A stretch of 64,000 nucleotides of DNA from Ministeria vibrans ATCC 50519 (taxonomy: Eukaryota > Protista > Filasterea). The DNA lies in NCBI GenBank assembly GCA_943704425.1, contig CALSCP010000572.1, positions 3,766 through 67,765 on the forward strand, in the 5' to 3' direction. Position numbers and translations under genes: made by a program. How positions within the stretch are numbered: the first letter of the stretch is position 1; each line of letters begins with the position of its first letter. Positions 45,020-53,462 of this stretch are shown here, one piece after another. The notes under the pieces were generated by a model. That model was not told the origin of the DNA. It saw nothing but the letters and a program-made list of their open reading frames with translations, and did no database searches.

Positions 45020-48000
45020 ATGGTCCAGTCCAGTCGGGTTCTGTTTCTCCTGGTCGCAACCCTCGTGTTGTGCAGTGTCAGCGCTCAATCGTGTCCCGCT
45101 GGCCTCGCCTGGACGTACGACGTGCTCAGCGGGACTCCCAACATGCCCACAGACTTTGTGGCGCGCAACATGGCGTTTGACAAGTCGCGCAAGATAATGT
45201 ACATTGCGGGAGAGGTAACAAACAAACACTAAACTTCCACAAAAGCACAAAACAAACAATCATCATCATCATCATACTCACTGTGTTCCTTATTATACTC
45301 ACTGTGTTCCTTATTAGACTGTCGCTTCAAAGGCAACGGTCATCGAATGCGCCGCGCCATACTCCAACCCATGCATTGTGCACCACCTGGATGCGTATGT
45401 GGGTGTGCCCAATCGTCGGATGAGCGGTGGTCGTGTCGTCTACGACGACCTCAACGACAAGCTCATTCACGTATCGACCGACGGCGACGCCAACGACCGT
45501 CTTGTTGCCGTTATCTGTCAGGCCCCTTCGCTTCAGACAGCCTCTTGCTACATTAGGTACATCTCGTCTATGCTCTCCGAAGACGATGGCTACGAGCCAC
45601 ATCCGTTTATCGTCGACAAAAAACTCTTTGTGGTCTCCCTCGTCAACTCGCTCGGCTCGCAACGCCTCGCATTCCACACATGCAGTGGACTGGATGCCTC
45701 ATTTTGCATCCGCAAGACCATTTTTACGTGGAACTACGCCGAAAGCATTGCGGTTGCGGTCAACGCAGACACAAAATGGGTCGTCGCGACGGGCCTTATC
45801 ACCACGGCCGTGTCTACCTCTTTGTCTACCTCGCGGCGTCGTGTGTGGGGCGGCACTTCGGACGATCGTCGTCGCGCCAGCTCCACCACACAGAGTGTCG
45901 CTGCGTTTGGCTGCAATACATCACCCATCATTAGCACAACGGAGTGCAAGCAAGAGCCCCTTATCAACGCCAACGACGAACTGCTCGCTACGACCAGTGC
46001 CATCGTTGCGCGCTCCGACAACACCCTCCTCTCCGTCGCGCGCAACCACCAGAACGAACTGGAAGTGTCCGAGTGCAACACACTCCTTACCTCCTGCTCC
46101 ACCCGCACCCTTGCCACTGTGGGTCTGCTCACAGGTGCCCCGGCAGTTCTCTACGACGCCATCACCCAACGCTTGCACATCCTCACCACCCGCCTTGCCG
46201 ACCGTCACCTCCTTCACACCGAATGCGACGCACTCCCTTTCACCCTCGACTCGTGCGTCACCACTGATATGTCCCTTGGTGTCTCCTTCGACGACCCCAC
46301 CGCCACAAGCAGCAATGATGTTTCGCCGCCTCTCATCGCACATGACCCAACCGCCGACGCGCTTATATTTTCCGCCTCCGCGCAGTCCATCCCGCACCTG
46401 TGGTCCTGCGCCGATACCTCCGCGCTCGTCCCGTGCGCCTCCAGCCCCTGCCAACACCCCTCCGCTACCTGCACGAATGCCCCTCTCAACCAGTTCTCCG
46501 CACCCGGCGCCCTAGCGTTCACCTGTGCCTGCCCTTCTGGTTTTGCCGGTGCCCTCTGCGACATTGAAGTCGACGCCGCCTTTGCTGAAGTTGCTTCGAA
46601 CGACATCAGCTCGCTTGCCTCGGCCTCCGCCACGCTCGTCGAGTTGTCTGAGCTCTCCCTCACGTCTGTTTACTCCGCAGCGATGCATTCTTCCGCTGCC
46701 GCCATGCACCTGGTTGCGGCTCTTCAGCACGTCGCCGATTTCACACTCACCCTCTCGCTCAACCTCACGTCCGTGTTGGCCGAGCACATTGTCGACACGA
46801 CGCTCGTCTCCGACATTGTCAGTGAGCAGCCCTCTTCGCTTGCCGAGTCCACTCTCGCAATGACCAATGCGCTCTTGTCGAACAATGCGTCGCGCACTTG
46901 GCTCGTCGAGCAGACCAACCAAGGTCCCACTCTGGCGCGCGTCGTCGAGACATGTCTGCGCACCCTTGCGCTTAACTCTACCTGTAACGCCCCCGTGCCC
47001 ACCATGCTTTTCCACGAGGCCTTTTCGCTCAACTACAAGCGCGTCTCGTCCATGAATGCCGTCACAGGTACCTTCAGCATCAACGGCTCCTCCATCACCG
47101 TTCCCGACCGCTTTCCTTCCGAATACGTTGCGAGCACGGCGCCCGCTCTGCTCGCCGCCCCTTGCTCTATCCCTCTCGAGCTCGCCGTCTACGCCCGTTC
47201 GCCCTTCCCCGCGCGACTCGCTCTCGGTGAGTCGTCTCTGGGCACCACCGTCTTCCTCGACTCGCCCATCGTGTCCTTCACCGCCGGCGCCGGCTCTGTC
47301 TTGGGCCTTTCCGACGACGCGAGCATTGCCATTGAGCTGACGGTTGGCAGTGAGCTCGTTGTGACGAAGCAAGTCAATGGCGTTGATGTCGAACTGACAG
47401 CGGCGGAGCTTGCCGCTCGTCGCGGCTGCTTCTTCTGGTCGTACACCCTTGACGGCTGGTCGTCCAGTGGCTGTCGCAAGACCCACGAGACACGCGAGAC
47501 CGTTACCTGCCGGTGCAATCATCTGACTAACTTTGCAGTGCTCTTTCAAGGTGACGCCACCACGACAGAGTCGCACCACCAGACGAACTCCCCCTCCGCG
47601 CACGATGGCATCAACGAGTGTGCGTCTGCGCCCTGTCTCAACGGCGGAAACTGCACCGACGGCAGCGGCAGCTTCATCTGCGATTGTCCTATGGGCTACA
47701 GCGGTTTCCTGTGCGAGCAAAACATCGACGAGTGTGTTTCGAGTCCCTGCGCGCCCGAGGCCACGTGTGTCTCCAATCTCAACTCCTTTGTCTGCCTGTG
47801 TCAACCGGGCTTCACCGGCGCACTCTGCCTTGAGGACATTGACGAGTGTCTGTCACAGCCCTGTCTCAATGGTGGCTCCTGCTCCAACCATCATGGCGCC
47901 TTTGCCTGTGCCTGTCCTGACACCTTCGAGGGCTTTACTTGTGCCGAGCCTTTTGACCCTTGCCGTTCGAATCCATGCTACGACGACGCCATCTGTGTCG

Positions 48001-50966
48001 CATCACCGGGTGTCAGCGCGAACTTTGTCTGCACCTGTCCCCCCGGCTTTGTTGGCGTCCAGTGCGAGCAGAATTTCGACGAGTGTGCGTCGCAACCGTG
48101 CTTTGACGGCGCCACCTGCGTTGATGGGGTCAATTCGTTCATCTGTGTGTGTCCCAGCATGCGCTTTGGCCTTCTCTGCAACCAGCTTGTCGACCCGTGT
48201 CTCTCTCAACCCTGTCCCGCTACCCATGTGTGTCTGCCATCGCCCACCACGGTCGCTGCGCACGTGTGTGAGTGTCCCCGTGGTTTCATGGGCACCACAT
48301 GTGCCATCGAAATCGACGAGTGTGCCTCACAGCCGTGTCTCAACGGCGCCAGTTGCGTCGACGCCCTTGCTGGCTACCATTGTGCGTGTGCCGCGGGCTG
48401 GACCGGCCTCCATTGCACGCGCAACATAGACGAGTGTGCGTCGCAGCCGTGTCTCAACGGCGCCACCTGTGTCGATTTGCCCAATGGGTTTGTGTGCAAC
48501 TGTGAGCCGGGACTCGAAGGGACCGTGTGTGACCAAGTTGTTGACTCCTGCGAGTCGTCGCCCTGTCACAATGGAGGCGCCTGTTCGCTCATTGCGCCGC
48601 TGCAGTTGGTATGTGAGTGTCCCATTGGCTACGAAGGGGTCTTTTGCGAGCGTCAAACCGACTACTGTGTGTCAAATCCGTGTCAGAATGGCGCTGTGTG
48701 TGTCAGCCAGCACGCCACTGGCTCCTTTGCTTGTGTGTGTGCGTCGAGCTTTGCCGGTGATTACTGCCAAGTTGCACTGGGCTATGCGGTTTTGCTGTCC
48801 ATTGGCGCCGATCACATGGACTTGACGCAGCACCAGTACGCCGAGGCGGGCCTCGTTGCAGTGGACGTACCGGCCAACTCGCTTGCCGAGACACTTGCGC
48901 TCACTGTGGGCGTTGCCGATGACCAGTCGCCTCGCACCAACGAGCCCTTTGCGCGTCGTGCCTCAGTCGTGTTTACGCTGTCACCCGCGACGACCTTCCT
49001 CAAGCCAGTGCGCATCACGGTGCCCGTGGGCGCGCGCAGTCGCGCGTCGCGCTTCAGCGTGTTCTACCGTGCCGAGGGCGCGACGCACTGGGAGCGCGCT
49101 CTCGAGCCCAGCGAGAACCTCGATGCAGGCACTGTCACGGCGGGTCTCATGCACTTTAGCGAACTTATTGCTTACTACGAGCCGGTTGACGATGCGTTGG
49201 CAAAGGCCACGCAGGTGTTCACCTGGCTCGGCGGCGTGCTCTCGGTGCTCTGCTGTTCCGCTCTCATCGTTGTCTTCCTGCTGTTTCCTTCGCTACGCAC
49301 CATTCCCGTCAAGTTCATTATGAATCTGTGTGTCGCCCTCATTGGTGTCAATGTGCTCTTCTTGGGCGGCATTGACCGCACTGAATCGCGCGCCGGCTGC
49401 ACCACAGTAAAGCTGGCACTGTACTACTTCCTTCTCGCGACCTTTTCGTGGATGACTGCCATTGCGTTGCACCTGTACCGGTCGCTTGTGCGCGGTCACA
49501 ACATCAAAAACGAGAAGCGCATCATGCTGGGTACGACCATTGTCGCCTGGCTGGTGCCCGTCGTACCCGTCTTTGTCGTGACCATGATTGACGTGCAGAC
49601 AGACATGTCGACGACAGGCCAGTCTGTCTGTTGGTTCACCACCGGCTCTACCCCCAATGCCCTTCTGTACGCCTTCCTTATTCCCGTGGCTGTCATGCTC
49701 GCCGCCAACATGATCATGCTTATTGGTTGCTACGTTGCCCTCGCCAAGAGCCGTCTGCGTCTGCGCCGCCAGATTGGCGAGAAGAACCTTGCCGGTAGCT
49801 CACAACTGCTGCGCGCGTGTATCATTCTCGCGGCGACTGTGGGCCTGACTTGGGTTGTGGCGTACATTGCGTTGGCTGTGGACGTAAGAGAAATTACGAG
49901 AGTCAGATGTTAATTGCATGACGTAATTGAATGTTTATATATGTTGTAGGTTCGCGGATTGTGGCTGGTGTTTGCACTGTGCAATGGATTCCAGGGAGTG
50001 TGGTTGTTCATTGCGTACTGTCTGGGACGTCGAGTGCGCACCGAGATCCGCAAAGGATTCACGGAGTGGCGCACACGGCAGATGAGTACGTCGGGACTGC
50101 GCAAGGGTACGAGTGGAAGTGATGAGGGTGATGTTGATATTATGGTGCGTGGGAGCACCAAGAGCTCGGGAAAGAGCAGCAAGAAGGAAAAGAAGAAGAG
50201 AAAGAAGCGTCGTGGATCGACGACGGAAGAGATGGACGACGAGGAGATGCAGCGGAGTATCCAGTATCTGATGCAGAATGAGGAGAGCGGATCGCATTCG
50301 TCGTCAGGCATGGGCATTCTGCTGCGTGACATGACACACGGGCGTCTCACGAGTGTATGGGATCCCGAGGAGGTGTCGCGGTCGGTGCGCAACAAGACGG
50401 CCAAGTACGATGTGGAGACGGCGATGACCGACTCCATGTGGATGGCCATTGAGGATGAGATGCTGCGCGACGAGACGTACAATCAGAGTGAGGGCCTGGA
50501 CGATATGTCGCCGCGCGCCGGCCGCCTCCAGAGTAACCCGGAGTTTAGCGATGATCCCACGCGTGGTCTGCTGGGCGCGTTGTCTTCATCATCGCCGCCC
50601 TCCAGTGCGTCGCCTATAAAGCGCTTCAAGCAGTCCCGCCCCTCCCCCATTGTCACCAGCAGCTTGTCCACTTTTGACTCGGGCTGGAACATGTCGGAGG
50701 TGAGCTATTGCGACAATACGACGAACAGCAGCATGATGGCAACGCCACCCGACAGCCGCTACCAGCAGTTGGCGCAGGTCGACTCGCCTCTCCCTTCTGC
50801 CTCTCCCAAGTCTCCCCGACGCACCTCCCTCTCCCTCTTTCGCCGCACCAACACCAAATCCTCCTCCTCCAAAGCGCTTTCCAACGCCACTCCCATGCAG
50901 TCCATCCCCAGCTATCTTGTCCACAGCGACTCTTCTCCCGCCTGGACCGAGTCTCTTCAGCTCTAA
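45020..50966 (+). CDS. Adhesion-class GPCR: signal peptide, Cys-rich N-domain, EGF, GAIN/GPS, 10 EGF, ZU5-like domain, 7TM, Ser-rich tail; exons 45020-45214, 45318-49883, 49950-50966
   Basis: GPS: CFFW..WSSSGC..TVTCRCNHLTNFAVL. 7TM class B2 motifs MNLCVAL, YFLLATFSWM..ALHLY, AWLVP, CWF, AFLIPVAVMLAAN, GLTWV, NGFQGVWLFIAYCL. Confidence 0.92.
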
Positions 50967-51255: not shown

Positions 51256-53166
51256 TCAGATTCGATCGAGTGGATCAAGACCAATGAGGGCAAGACCAGT
51301 TGCAAGGACGCGCTGGGTAGCCATGAAGAGGAGAGCACGGGCAGCGGCACGGGCACGGTCGGGCTCGTCGGCGACTCGATGCATATGGCAGGCGGCGTTG
51401 GCGGCGGATGCAGTTTCAACGAGAGCGCGGACGAGCGGGGAGGGGTCGCGGGCGGCAAGGGAGCGCTCGATGGTGATGGGAAAGGTGCTGAGTTGCCAGG
51501 TGAGACGGTGGAGGGAGGCGGTGCTCTCGTGTGGAGTAGTGCTATTGCTACTGTTGCTGTTTTTGTTATTGTTGGTGATGGTGAGTTGTTTGATAGCGTC
51601 GAGGGTAGCTGGGCAGCGAAGAAGTTCGCGTGTGCGCTCACGTACGGCGCAAGGGTCAGTGGGATCGGCGAAGATGCGGCCGTGACGGGCAATGCCGCAC
51701 AAGCGTGTGTGGGTGAACTGCAGATAGGGTCCAGTGGTGCCGGAGGGAGAGCACATGCGCGTCCAGTCAAAGGCGTACGGACGAGTGCGGCCCAGATAAA
51801 CGTCCTGGACTACCACTGCCGAGAGGCCGAGCACGTGAGCCGCATGAGACGGGTCTGTGGTACGCTGCCGTTCGCTGTCGGGTCGCTTATGGTCAATCCA
51901 CTCCCGCATAAATGTCGTTGCCTCGTCCAGTACGTCTGAGAGAAGCACCACGCGACCTGCGCGTGTGCTCATACCCGTTACTGCGCCCACATCGATGTGA
52001 TGACAGCAGTGCGCTGCCCACTCGTGTCCTGTGTCCCGTAGCAAGGCAAAGAGACGCGCAAAGTGCAGTCGCTGGTCTTTCCCGACCACATAGAGAATTT
52101 CGTCGGGTTTGTACTTTTCATAGCGGTCCACAGCGGCCGCATAATCGCGACTAAGGTAAGTAGTGGTGTTTGAGTGGGAGCGTGCGAGTAGCGCACTGCC
52201 CAGTTCGTCACCCAGGTCGGCGAAAAGGCCACCCTTGTCGTCGAAGAAGCGCAGAGTGTTTTGTGCCGGTGGTTGCTGCTGTTGTGGCGGTGACGGTGAC
52301 GCATCAATGGATTGACGCCAAAAGTGCGTGTATTGCTGTGCGGCCGTCACATAGTCGCTTTCGTAGTGGAACGCGTCGAAACGAACGCGCAAGCGAGCGT
52401 ACATGTCTTCGAGTGCCGGCAGACTGAGGGCACGCAGGTGTTTCCAGCGCGCGATGAGGGGCTCGTGGCCACGCTCCATGTCGGACAGGTAGTGGCGGGC
52501 ACGGTCGTGGATTGAGGGATCCGTTTCGGCGTGCTGGTGGACGCGTACGTACACGTCGACAAGGTGCTTGAGCAGGTCGACGGACGACATCGTCTGGGCA
52601 CTGGCATCGGCAAACAGGTCGAGCCCCACGCCCAGCATGCCGTACTGCTTCCCCCAGTCGCCCAGATAGTTGATGCTGACGGTGCGGTGGCCTGTGTACG
52701 CGTACAGTCGCTGCAGACAGGCGCCAATGTTTGTCGAGCGCAAATGACCAGCATGAAACGGTTTGGCGACATTGGGAGAGGAATAGTCCAGGAGGATGGT
52801 GCGCCCCTGGCCCAGGCTGGACGATCCGTAGCAGCGAGGAAAGGCAGAGGACGGCGAGGAGGAGGAGGAGGAGGAGGAGGAGGAGGAGACGTGTAGCGAC
52901 GACAACTGATCGACTGTTGGAATCTGATCGCACGCAACAAGTACGTCGTCGACCGTCTCGCAGAACATGGTCTCTGGAGAGGGCGTGGCGAGCCACACTC
53001 GACCCGGGACTGTGTTGGTGAGCGTGCCCAAATGCGATTGGTGCGGAAGCGCACTCTGATCAGTCCGGATCACAATGCCTTGACGTTCCGGTCGCACCTG
53101 CATCGCGTGAGCAGGCACGTCCGTCAGGGCACTTAGCGATCGGATGAGTCGCGACAAGTATGCCAT
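51256..53166 (-). CDS. RARS2: Arginyl-tRNA synthetase, mitochondrial type; intronless
   Basis: DYSSPNVAKPFHAGHLRST (HIGH region), INYLGDWGKQYG, TTYLSRD, GMSTRAG, TGPYLQFTHTRLC; transit-peptide-like N-terminus. Confidence 0.92.
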   Translation of the reverse strand: MAYLSRLIRSLSALTDVPAHAMQVRPERQGIVIRTDQSALPHQSHLGTLTNTVPGRVWLATPSPETMFCETVDDVLVACDQIPTVDQLSSLHVSSSSSSSSSSSPSSAFPRCYGSSSLGQGRTILLDYSSPNVAKPFHAGHLRSTNIGACLQRLYAYTGHRTVSINYLGDWGKQYGMLGVGLDLFADASAQTMSSVDLLKHLVDVYVRVHQHAETDPSIHDRARHYLSDMERGHEPLIARWKHLRALSLPALEDMYARLRVRFDAFHYESDYVTAAQQYTHFWRQSIDASPSPPQQQQPPAQNTLRFFDDKGGLFADLGDELGSALLARSHSNTTTYLSRDYAAAVDRYEKYKPDEILYVVGKDQRLHFARLFALLRDTGHEWAAHCCHHIDVGAVTGMSTRAGRVVLLSDVLDEATTFMREWIDHKRPDSERQRTTDPSHAAHVLGLSAVVVQDVYLGRTRPYAFDWTRMCSPSGTTGPYLQFTHTRLCGIARHGRIFADPTDPCAVRERTRELLRCPATLDAIKQLTITNNNKNSNSSNSTTPHESTASLHRLTWQLSTFPITIERSLAARDPSPLVRALVETASAANAACHMHRVADEPDRARAAARALLFMATQRVLATGLALIGLDPLDRI

Positions 53167-53462
53167 CAATATAAAGACGAAAATTTGAATAATAAGTCAT
53201 AAGAAAATAAAAATTATTAGAATCAAGAGCTGTACTCAATGTCAAAACAAAACTATAATATACAAAACAAAGAGCAGCAAAATACTTCCGCCGTAGACTT
53301 TTAGACGAGAATGTCCCGATAGAAGCCCATAGACCCATAATAATAATTATTGTTATTATAAGTAACTATTATTATTAATTTATTATTGTATTAAATTTTA
53401 TTTTATTTTGAGAGTTTACTCTGTACAATCTGTCTTTCGAAAATATAATTCTTATTGTGTTG

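Follow-up and report, generated by a model that had tools for sequence, protein, structure and literature searches.

A ZU5-like, candidate self-cleaving domain between the EGF stalk and the membrane of an adhesion-class receptor in Ministeria vibrans

In a recent survey of adhesion GPCRs, covering 99 from filastereans and 301 from choanoflagellates, the GAIN/7TM combination is presented as usual ('most, but not all'); the main text makes no mention of ZU5. The GAIN and ZU5 domains have been placed in one superfamily (Liao et al., 2014, as cited; Zhang et al., 2012, PMC3482391). The ZU5 autopeptidases of bacterial surface proteins and polymorphic toxins are extracellular, stand as a rule at the N-terminus of RHS or adhesin proteins and are described with a CxH thiol active-site motif; autoproteolytic processing of large surface proteins is their proposed task (PMC3482391). 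Here we describe a gene in a window of 64,000 nucleotides (the whole stretch of DNA analysed) whose product is a 7tm_2 GPCR of the adhesion class, from a filasterean-like unicellular eukaryote, with a candidate self-cleaving EGF-ZU5 cassette between GAIN/GPS and TM1. Unlike the bacterial enzymes, this ZU5 is a juxtamembrane module of eukaryotic signalling receptors. We found no ZU5 next to a 7TM core in the literature searched.

Compared with canonical adhesion GPCRs, specifically ADGRF1/GPR110, CD97/ADGRE5, ADGRL3, Capsaspora CAOG_00386 and CAOG_00812 and gene C2221 of the same genome, the receptor shares the 7tm_2 core, a long EGF-bearing ectodomain, a GAIN with an intact C-x-C-x-H-L-T-x-F-A-V-L GPS and, ~16-24 residues ahead of TM1, a triad of the autoproteolysis type with a buried beta-strand after it. 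It differs in that a ZU5 rather than a GAIN abuts TM1, that its GAIN/GPS is 538 residues off, on the far side of 10 EGF repeats, and that the juxtamembrane strand reads SELIAYY, not TxFAVLM. As read from the sequence, the gene has three exons (45020-50966, + strand), and the protein runs from a signal peptide and N-terminal region through one EGF, the GAIN with its GPS, 10 EGF and a domain of ~135 aa to the 7tm_2 core:

45020-45214, + strand: exon 1 (65 codons) with the start codon and a signal peptide (MVQSSRVLFLLVATLVLCSVSAQ...), followed at 45215 by the donor GTAACA (sequence reading)
45215-45317, + strand: intron 1, 103 nt, GT...AG, phase 0, acceptor AG at 45316-45317
45318-46574, + strand: start of exon 2, N-terminal ectodomain, then one EGF-like repeat (Pfam)
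46575-47552, + strand: GAIN region with intact GPS (Pfam GPS, 51.2 bits on this piece)
47553-48764, + strand: short linker and stalk of 10 EGF repeats (Pfam EGF, 10 stretches, 163 bits)
48765-49214, + strand: ZU5-like beta-sandwich including strand SELIAYY, and linker to TM1 (AF2, Foldseek, VIA-align, family profile)
49152-49160, + strand: His-Phe-Ser triad, candidate HF|S autoproteolysis site (conservation in 25 paralogs, position in the model)
49206-49883, + strand: 7tm_2 core with TM1-TM6, closing exon 2 (Pfam 7tm_2, 94.7 bits, ORF aa 1277-1499)
49884-49949, + strand: intron 2, 66 nt, GTAAGA...TTGTAG, phase 0, with an in-frame TAA
49950-50966, + strand: exon 3, with TM7 (VRGLWLVFALCNGFQGVWLFIAYC) and, down to the stop codon, a long cytoplasmic tail of low complexity

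The frame of the long ORF carries on into exon 2 after intron 1, and exon 2 (45318-49883) stays open for 1522 codons. In the N-terminal ectodomain Pfam gives just weak EGF matches, near ORF aa 353-397; by eye, unaligned, the N-terminal layout resembles that of C2221 (read from the L047 protein). The only intron within the receptor core is the 66-nt intron 2, just ahead of TM7. A paralog at C572:74 kb apparently has an intron at the same point, the frame of paralogs L002-L004 is uninterrupted there, and the TM7 of exon 3 aligns to paralogs without a break. Exon 3 has no Pfam match above cut-offs. The contig, not a human one, belongs to a small eukaryotic genome, and among named proteins the 7TM has its closest relatives in Capsaspora owczarzaki.

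The distal GPS, CRCNHL|TNFAVLF, is encoded at ~47508-47546 with its HL|T codons at 47520-47528, and was matched at ORF aa 684-722 with 47.8 bits in the whole-ORF Pfam scan (45378-49883, + strand). The preliminary description was right that the CNHLTNFAVL motif is intact and slightly off in placing it, at 47520-47545 instead of 47514-47543. By phmmer, the GAIN region matches the ADGRF1 GAIN-B (7wu3_R, E 4.5e-9, ~100 aa) as well as ADGRL3, CELSR1 and ADGRG3, and from its length only we infer that a helical subdomain A is present. Pfam and the single continuous exon agree with the earlier reading that 10 EGF repeats, not TM1, come after the GPS; the Pfam stretches span ~aa 743-1125, and the same count is reached from six-Cys patterns by eye.

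The juxtamembrane domain of the window's receptor, scanned alone (48765-49214), gave no match to Pfam, ZU5 included. Its family does: ZU5 is matched by 5 of 11 members, and three paralogs pass the cut-off of 21 bits, namely the GPCR on C2584 (22.4 bits), L018 (25.4) and L021 (29.6). Profiles of 11 and 25 paralogs match the ZU5 of ankyrin-2 (4d8o_A) with E 6e-10 and 2.8e-12 respectively and, weakly, those of UNC5B and ZO-1. The AF2 model built on the 25-paralog alignment (pLDDT 86.7, pTM 0.81) retrieves ankyrin ZU5 in Foldseek (E 3e-6, TM 0.66-0.72), and in VIA-align ankyrin ZU5 is again the top match (Z 13.5-14), ahead of GAINs (Z 8-10.4, CD97 reaching 10.4), UNC5b (8.2), CARD8 (7.7), NLRP1 (6.3-6.8) and Nup98 (4.3-4.9). 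The AlphaFold comparison with ZU5 that the preliminary description had proposed thus has ankyrin ZU5 as its best fold match (TM 0.72, Z 14), and its proposal of a ZU5-like fold is borne out jointly by sequence profiles, Pfam on the paralogs and fold matches. Together, profiles and predicted structure show the 135-aa juxtamembrane domain to be a true ZU5-superfamily beta-sandwich.

The triad lies at exactly the position first reported for it, 49152-49160, with codons 49155-49157 and 49158-49160 flanking the candidate scissile bond. It is also as close to TM1 as had been claimed: its Ser, ORF residue 1261, stands 16 residues ahead of the start of the 7tm_2 match at 1277. A lone HFS tripeptide in a protein of ~1900 aa has no significance by itself. 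The 25 paralog domains share just 13-35% identity with that of the window, and H-F-S is the best conserved motif across the family (first position His 20, Ser 4, Glu 1; second Phe 21, Leu 3, Met 1; third Ser 23, Thr 1, Gly 1); because the triad is kept at such divergence, its presence goes beyond chance. In the model it forms residues 130-132, within the last beta-hairpin (E123-140), and structural alignments to N-terminal-fragment chains end at residue 131, the Phe (at 1212 in NLRP1, 863 in Nup98, 382 in GPR56 and 566 in GPR110). Modelled in this way, HFS is shown to occupy the scissile-bond position of the NLRP1/CARD8 FIIND, Nup98 and GAIN. When ~100 ordinary adhesion GPCRs are aligned, HLT falls under HFS in 58, and HLS, HMT and HFT in 2 each; in this alignment HF|S is in register to TM1 with their HL|T.

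Like the FIIND of NLRP1 and CARD8, PIDD1 and UNC5CL, the Ministeria domain combines a ZU5 fold with an H/S-F-S triad at its end, and in the model its candidate cleavage position superposes on F1212|S1213 of NLRP1. The family contains both HFS and SFS, the latter being the site type of NLRP1/CARD8 (PMC9539791). As in the autoproteolytic ZU5 proteins, the strand after the site, SELIAYY, is an integral part of the modelled sandwich and would thereby keep the fragments together. FIIND, PIDD1 and UNC5CL, however, are cytoplasmic and continue after the site into UPA plus CARD or a death domain, whereas the Ministeria domain is extracellular and is followed by one strand and then the 7TM or a single TM; the similarity to FIIND (Z 6.3-7.7) also falls below that to ankyrin ZU5. 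In both sequence and fold, the domain is matched best by the ZU5 of ankyrins, UNC5A-D and ZO-1, cytoplasmic protein-binding modules which, to our knowledge, do not cleave and have no conserved HFS.

At least 25 paralogs of the domain are found in the same genome (29.7 Mb searched). The EGF-ZU5 block is present in five receptors, all of one 7TM clade; they have 41-48% 7TM identity, keep both HLT and HFS, and group with a sixth member, C2221, in the 7TM tree (100/100). C2221 shares their outer architecture but has its GPS directly on TM1, without the block between. A canonical GPS is kept in every paralog whose distal GAIN can be seen, and the stalk varies from 2 to at least 13 EGFs among the GPCR paralogs. 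The GPS-EGF-ZU5-7tm_2 architecture that was earlier suggested as a search target occurs within the genome in these five receptors; since the searches gave no relative of this architecture beyond the Ministeria genome, its conservation is known among paralogs only. At least 8 receptor tyrosine kinases and many EGF or Sushi single-pass proteins also carry the ZU5-HFS module ahead of their membrane span, at least 20 single-pass receptors in total. Judged by this distribution, it is a general juxtamembrane module and not specific to one receptor, a point the preliminary description missed; a general part in cleavage or shedding is thereby no less likely than one as an agonist specific to GPCRs.

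The proposed logic resembles that of SEA domains and other self-cleaving modules beside the membrane (MUC1 SEA, the SEA of ADGRF1/F5, the GAIN of polycystin-1): extracellular juxtamembrane self-cleavage would give a non-covalent receptor of two fragments, separable under force, and the module is used across several receptor classes. Fold and motif differ, however; the domain has no G|SVVV motif, and no SEA structure is among the fold matches listed for the AF2 model. Specifically, we think it fairly probable, from the analysis above, that the ZU5 domain cleaves itself at HF|S, presumably via the N-O acyl shift used across the superfamily, which would leave an N- and C-terminal fragment pair held together non-covalently by SELIAYY. 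If the N-terminal fragment were pulled away, S-E-L-I-A-Y-Y would be freed and could serve as a tethered agonist of the 7TM, the ZU5 doing the usual job of GAIN; we put this last step forward tentatively, as somewhat less than an even chance. At P7', 4 of the 5 GPCR members have Tyr where other members mostly have Ser, Gly or Thr, an aromatic residue that does not conflict with the hydrophobic P6'/P7' in the agonist consensus TxFAVLM; SELIAYY and TxFAVLM differ most clearly at P3' (Leu/Val, not Phe).

A reading which we find rather unlikely accepts cleavage at ZU5-HFS but gives it solely the role of a mechanical fuse or shedding module, like mucin SEA, in which the exposed strand does not activate the 7TM and the cassette came into the GPCR as an EGF-ZU5 unit. 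The module does stand ahead of RTK and EGF/Sushi single-pass spans, where there is no 7TM pocket. The S-x-V-x-x-F/Y pattern of the post-cleavage strand is common to GPCR and single-pass members, hence dictated by the fold and no evidence of agonist function, and the ZU5 tree places the GPCR copies, weakly (73/70), beside a single-pass EGF-ZU5-TM gene on C2066 that adjoins a GPCR paralog. Against this reading, the Ser-TM1 spacing is short, conserved and fixed at ~16 residues in the GPCR members, matching the canonical Stachel register, whereas single-pass members have long Gly/Ser-rich, low-complexity linkers, and the aromatic at P7' is GPCR-specific.

It is also doubtful that the domain does not cleave at all and is a ZU5 spacer or ligand-binding module with HFS kept for structure, as its ankyrin/UNC5 top matches and members with degenerate triads (E-M-G in L033, no motif in L039) might suggest. 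The triad is the family's best conserved short motif despite its divergence, the variants SFS, HLS and HLT are those of cleaving relatives, the two triad-less domains are also the two that adjoin no membrane span, and profile alignments to ankyrin ZU5 end at profile position 109-118, ahead of the triad.

A degenerate, cysteine-less second GAIN subdomain B in place of ZU5 is very improbable: MHFSELIAYY does resemble NHLTNFAVLF in register, GAINs are the second-best fold matches and the literature unites the two domains, but profiles and Pfam favour ZU5, hhalign finds no significant match between the family and 91 canonical GAIN-B segments (E 0.08, probability 0.7%), ankyrin ZU5 at Z 14 clearly exceeds the best GAIN at 10.4, and the domain follows directly on an EGF repeat, with no helical subdomain A in front. 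Equally improbable is splicing of the EGF-ZU5 block out of the mature mRNA to give an ordinary GAIN-7TM receptor, the architecture of the close paralog C2221, since GPS, EGF repeats, ZU5-like domain and TM1-TM6 share one exon without a stop, five paralogs keep the block open and conserved at the protein level with the triad intact, and the one GT...AG pair checked by eye near the block ends is out of frame, with a donor (GTGACG) unlike the real ones (GTAACA, GTAAGA).

Returning to the self-cleaving ZU5, the distal GAIN is probably a second, independent break point on the EGF stalk of variable length; cleavage at HF|S beside the membrane and shedding at the distal GAIN would make a two-step proteolytic design. 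Since ZU5-HFS precedes many single-pass spans, its basic role is probably to cleave or to release under force next to the membrane, and one clade of GPCRs would have co-opted it. Of the earlier idea that a ZU5-type fold substitutes for GAIN, the structural half stands, in fold, site position, TM1 register and intact distal GAIN, while autocleavage, tethered agonism and distal shedding are its predicted functional half. In these adhesion GPCRs of a single-celled relative of animals, a ZU5 with a candidate cleavage site takes the place of GAIN beside the membrane, and GAIN lies far out on the EGF stalk.

The receptor gene of the window lies on the forward strand, and protein searches with it were made exon by exon. 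Its parts are as follows.

45020-45214, + strand: exon 1, with the ATG and signal peptide, donor GTAACA
45215-45317, + strand: intron 1
45318-49883, + strand: exon 2, 1522 codons
49884-49949, + strand: intron 2, 66 nt, GTAAGA...TTGTAG, phase 0, with a TAA inside
49950-50966, + strand: exon 3, with TM7 and the tail

In the long open reading frame (amino acids counted over 45378-49883), Pfam identifies a GPS at amino acids 684-722 (PF01825, 47.8-51.2 bits), ten EGF stretches and a 7tm_2 core at amino acids 1277-1499 (PF00002, 94.7 bits against a cut-off of 20.6 bits). Ahead of the GPS, the sequence matches the GAIN-B domain of ADGRF1 (E 4.5e-9) and other adhesion GPCRs, and the nearest named relatives of the 7TM part are family-2 GPCRs of Capsaspora owczarzaki. 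With the GPS ending at amino acid 722 and the 7tm_2 match starting at 1277, no GAIN/GPS lies directly N-terminal to TM1, and the strand next to the membrane reads SELIAYY, not TxFAVLM. The preliminary description had reported a GPS reading CNHLTNFAVL, then ten EGF repeats, then a juxtamembrane domain with an HFS triad: the GPS is there, at 47514-47543, a few bases from the position first assigned to it, the ten repeats are those recovered by Pfam, and the triad falls exactly at 49152-49160.

Three observations concern the gene and its surroundings. The N-terminal ~330 amino acids of the ectodomain (45318-46400, amino acids ~1-340 of the reading frame) have no Pfam match and by eye resemble the N-terminus of C2221, a sister receptor whose GPS adjoins TM1. 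The intron just before TM7 apparently has a position common to the tandem paralogs of this contig, C572 (49884-49949 in the window; L005/L016, ~74.9 kb), and in the three remaining paralogs with ZU5 the reading frame continues uninterrupted at that place. Downstream, a long reading frame on the minus strand (51256-53169) looks by eye like an arginyl-tRNA synthetase with an insert rich in poly-Ser and poly-Gln.

The ~135 amino acids between the last EGF repeat and TM1 give no Pfam match when scanned alone. Within the genome (29.7 Mb, 2860 contigs) a protein search finds 11 paralogs of the domain, and a profile gives 29 matches. The profile of the 11 paralogs matches both ZU5 domains of ankyrin-2 (4d8o_A, E 6e-10), and a 25-paralog profile matches ankyrin-2 ZU5 at E 2.8e-12; weak matches to the ZU5 domains of UNC5B and ZO-1 come next. 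Pfam ZU5 (PF00791) is itself matched by 5 of the 11 members (best 3.3e-8), and its 21-bit cut-off is exceeded by the GPCR paralog on C2584 and by the single-pass proteins L018 and L021. From the single sequence of ZU5 plus 7TM, AlphaFold2 reached a pLDDT of 50; with the alignment of 25 paralogs it returned a confident all-beta model (pLDDT 86.7, pTM 0.81).

Structural matches of the juxtamembrane domain model
Foldseek, ankyrin ZU5 (3f59, 4d8o, 3ud1): E 3e-6, TM 0.66-0.72
Foldseek, UNC5b: TM 0.62
Foldseek, GAIN domains and NLRP1: lower
VIA-align, ankyrin ZU5: Z 13.5-14.0, 118-134 residues aligned
VIA-align, CD97 GAIN: Z 10.4
VIA-align, BAI3 GAIN: Z 8.8
VIA-align, UNC5b: Z 8.2
VIA-align, CARD8: Z 7.7
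VIA-align, NLRP1: Z 6.3-6.8
VIA-align, Nup98: Z 4.3-4.9

The AlphaFold model and the family profile both match ankyrin ZU5 best, in agreement with the ZU5-like fold proposed when the sequence was first read. A degenerate GAIN-B domain is one alternative: a likeness of fold to GAIN is present, second to that with ZU5. Because an hhalign comparison with 91 canonical GAIN-B segments was not significant (E 0.08, probability 0.7%), the domain as modelled is a ZU5 beta-sandwich, not a decayed second GAIN; the triad is not preceded by a C-x-C either, and the domain follows directly on an EGF repeat. A SEA domain can be set aside, with no SEA structure among the listed fold matches, no Pfam SEA match and a model that is all-beta. 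Nor does a UPA domain follow the triad, as it would in the autoproteolytic ZU5 domains of FIIND type (PIDD1, UNC5CL, NLRP1, CARD8), whose [H/S]-F-S triad in the C-terminal hairpin the domain otherwise has: one beta-strand and a linker of 16 residues lead to TM1. The ESM Atlas, with bacterial clusters at 0.92-0.93 and a ZU5 cluster at 0.87, provides a lead only. Two further Pfam ZU5 matches of 28-29 bits in the genome (G000:C124:27734-27994 and C1157:16343-16519) are missed by the profile of the juxtamembrane family and may be classical cytoplasmic ZU5 proteins. The families among the structural matches (GAIN, ZU5 and Nup98-type) are treated as one ancient autoproteolytic fold in passages of PMC9539791 and PMC11697300 that draw on Liao et al. 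(2014), and also in Zhang et al. (2012; PMC3482391).

The HFS triad of this ZU5-like domain corresponds to model residues 130-132, in the last hairpin (E123-140), where pLDDT is above 90. It is conserved across 25 paralogs that share only 13-35% identity with the window's domain: the first residue is H in 20, S in 4 and E in 1, the second F in 21, L in 3 and M in 1, and the third S in 23, T in 1 and G in 1. The triad is absent only from the first copy in L033 and from L039, neither of which adjoins a membrane span. HLS and HLT, which occur among the variants, resemble a GPS. Several solved chains of the superfamily consist of the N-terminal autoproteolytic fragment alone, and their alignments stop at the phenylalanine of the triad.

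Chains whose alignment ends at model residue 131 (Phe)
NLRP1, 6x6c_E: ...1212
Nup98, 1ko6_A: ...863
GPR56, 5kvm_A: ...382
GPR110, 8hc0_A: ...566

The NLRP1 chain ends at its cleavage site, F1212|S1213, and the GPR56 (...382) and GPR110 (...566) chains likewise end at cleavage positions. Nup98 is cleaved before the catalytic Ser-864, and the SFS variant found among the paralogs is that of NLRP1 and CARD8 (both PMC9539791). The modelled fold shows the conserved triad at the scissile position of the superfamily.

Among the matches listed, searches beyond the genome returned no second example of the arrangement. Word-index protein searches, which are of limited sensitivity, gave no match for the window's domain or for the ZU5 regions of L017 and L021, nor did they bring up the proteins of the genome itself. 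With a ZU5+7TM profile against 1.84 billion representatives, the best 150 of 8992 matches all proved to be adhesion GPCRs of the ordinary kind or fragments with a 7TM alone, and a local hmmsearch of those 150 gave no ZU5-like match; the library held no match of self strength, so the source genome is apparently absent from it. A metagenome locus scan with the same profile gave 142 pattern matches and no relative. A GPS-EGF-ZU5-7TM relative was not found in protein libraries or metagenome contigs, as far as the best 150 profile matches and a word index of limited sensitivity extend. Full-text literature searches turned up no paper in which a ZU5 domain adjoins a 7TM and none that names ZU5 in filasterean or choanoflagellate receptors, and the main text of a 2025 eLife survey of GPCRs in animal relatives gives GAIN/7TM as the rule and makes no mention there of ZU5.

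The same profile allows the triad to be placed relative to the membrane, by aligning it with the best 150 adhesion GPCRs of the 8992 matches. Roughly 100 alignments reach the triad columns: HLT stands exactly under HFS in 58, and HLS, HMT and HFT in 2 each. The alignments in this way show the putative ZU5 site at the canonical GPS position relative to TM1, with the triad in the canonical register and SELIAYY as the strand that, judged by sequence, takes the place of TNFAVLM. The linker from triad to membrane is 16 conserved residues in the GPCR members and long and rich in Gly, Ser and Thr in the single-pass members; P7' is Tyr in 4 of the 5 GPCR members and mostly small elsewhere in the family.

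Matches across the genome number roughly 46-60 for 7tm_2 and 57 for GPS, and at most other 7tm_2 loci the GPS precedes the 7TM match by roughly 30-170 nt. A ZU5 domain stands directly before TM1 at five loci: the window gene, a second gene at ~74 kb on C572, and one each on C2066, C2584 and C1103. At four of them the GPS can be read, and there the order GPS-EGF-ZU5-7tm_2, the architecture for which a search had been suggested, recurs: the distance from a canonical GPS down to the ZU5 domain is 0.3-1.2 kb, that to the 7TM match 0.7-1.7 kb, and the stalk between GPS and ZU5 has about 2, 6, 10 and 10 EGF repeats. On C1103 the contig ends within the stalk, of which at least 13 EGF repeats are visible. 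The distal GAIN/GPS is intact, and both motifs, the GPS and the HFS triad, have been retained long-term in the GPCR clade.

In a tree of the 7TM regions, the five ZU5-bearing receptors and C2221 (L047, G000:C2221:3442-7101) form a clade with 100/100 support. C2221 resembles the others in its N-terminal region, EGF repeats and GAIN, and carries CRCSHLTNFAVLF directly before TM1. The tree puts it inside the clade (94/90, long branch); a single ZU5 gain may lie behind this, either followed by a loss or with C2221 as the sister branch. When the ZU5 domains themselves are compared, those of the five GPCRs fall together with that of L017, an EGF-ZU5-single-TM gene adjoining the C2066 GPCR, but with weak support (73/70). 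Among the other 7tm_2 genes, L039/L051 (G000:C2362:38083-40791, minus strand) has a weak ZU5-like match without the HFS triad, followed by EGF repeats and a weak GPS on the 7TM, so that the two kinds of fold have changed places, and a 7tm_2 match at G000:C716:7704-8339 (minus strand) contains four in-frame stops (1 TAG, 3 TAA) and may be a pseudogene or contain introns.

The ZU5 module is not confined to GPCRs. At least eight receptor tyrosine kinases carry it before the span (L019, L023, L025, L027, L028, L029, L037 and L038), L026 being a near copy of L025; together they lie on C879, C320, C1708, C1664, C313, C1426, C1788, C2846 and C2736. Their ectodomains are of EGF or Sushi type and end, close to the membrane span, in a ZU5-like domain with H-[FL]-S, and they would be candidate two-fragment receptor tyrosine kinases. 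The module also directly precedes the span in EGF-only proteins (L017, L018, L021, L022, L032 and L034) and a single span in one Sushi protein (L024). In two further EGF-only proteins it stands farther from the span: in L031 (G000:C232), where the triad of the ZU5-like domain is a GPS-like HLT, one more EGF repeat intervenes, and in L033 (G000:C1890) the span comes only after a long low-complexity stretch. L033 has two tandem ZU5-like domains, the first without the triad (E-M-G).

For the GPCRs we propose a mechanism in which the ZU5 domain cleaves itself at the candidate HF|S site, which we think probable. The N-terminal fragment would stay bound non-covalently through the buried strand; on its removal the exposed strand could act as a tethered agonist, a step we put forward tentatively and would not bet on. 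The distal GAIN would form an independent break point. A general role as a fuse or in shedding is the safer reading, because the module is common to single-pass receptors; an agonist role specific to the GPCRs is the more interesting one. The most far-reaching version is unlikely to hold in full. It says that ZU5 took over the complete function of GAIN, with self-cleavage at HF|S and a non-TxFAVLM agonist (S-[DE]-V-x-V-Y-Y-E) presented to the 7TM, that an ancestral GAIN persists as a distal second break point, and that extracellular ZU5-HFS served pre-metazoan receptors quite generally, receptor tyrosine kinases among them, as a juxtamembrane module of autoproteolysis so far unrecognised, in function the counterpart of animal SEA and GAIN.

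The GAIN/7TM module is what defines adhesion GPCRs, and the model of their activation is built on a tethered agonist buried in GAIN. In the receptors described here the position of GAIN is held, in exactly the same register, by a sister fold of the ancient autoproteolytic superfamily (GAIN, ZU5, Nup98). Together with the canonical close paralog C2221 as control, the ZU5-bearing receptors would form a natural swap experiment, which asks whether tethered agonism needs GAIN itself or whether any cleavable beta-sandwich with a hydrophobic strand buried in it would do. To our knowledge, eukaryotic ZU5 domains have so far been cytoplasmic modules; here, in a unicellular organism closely related to animals, the domain is predicted at the cell surface in ~25 receptors, some of them receptor tyrosine kinases. 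Such a location would bear on the origin of force-sensitive two-fragment receptors before animal multicellularity.
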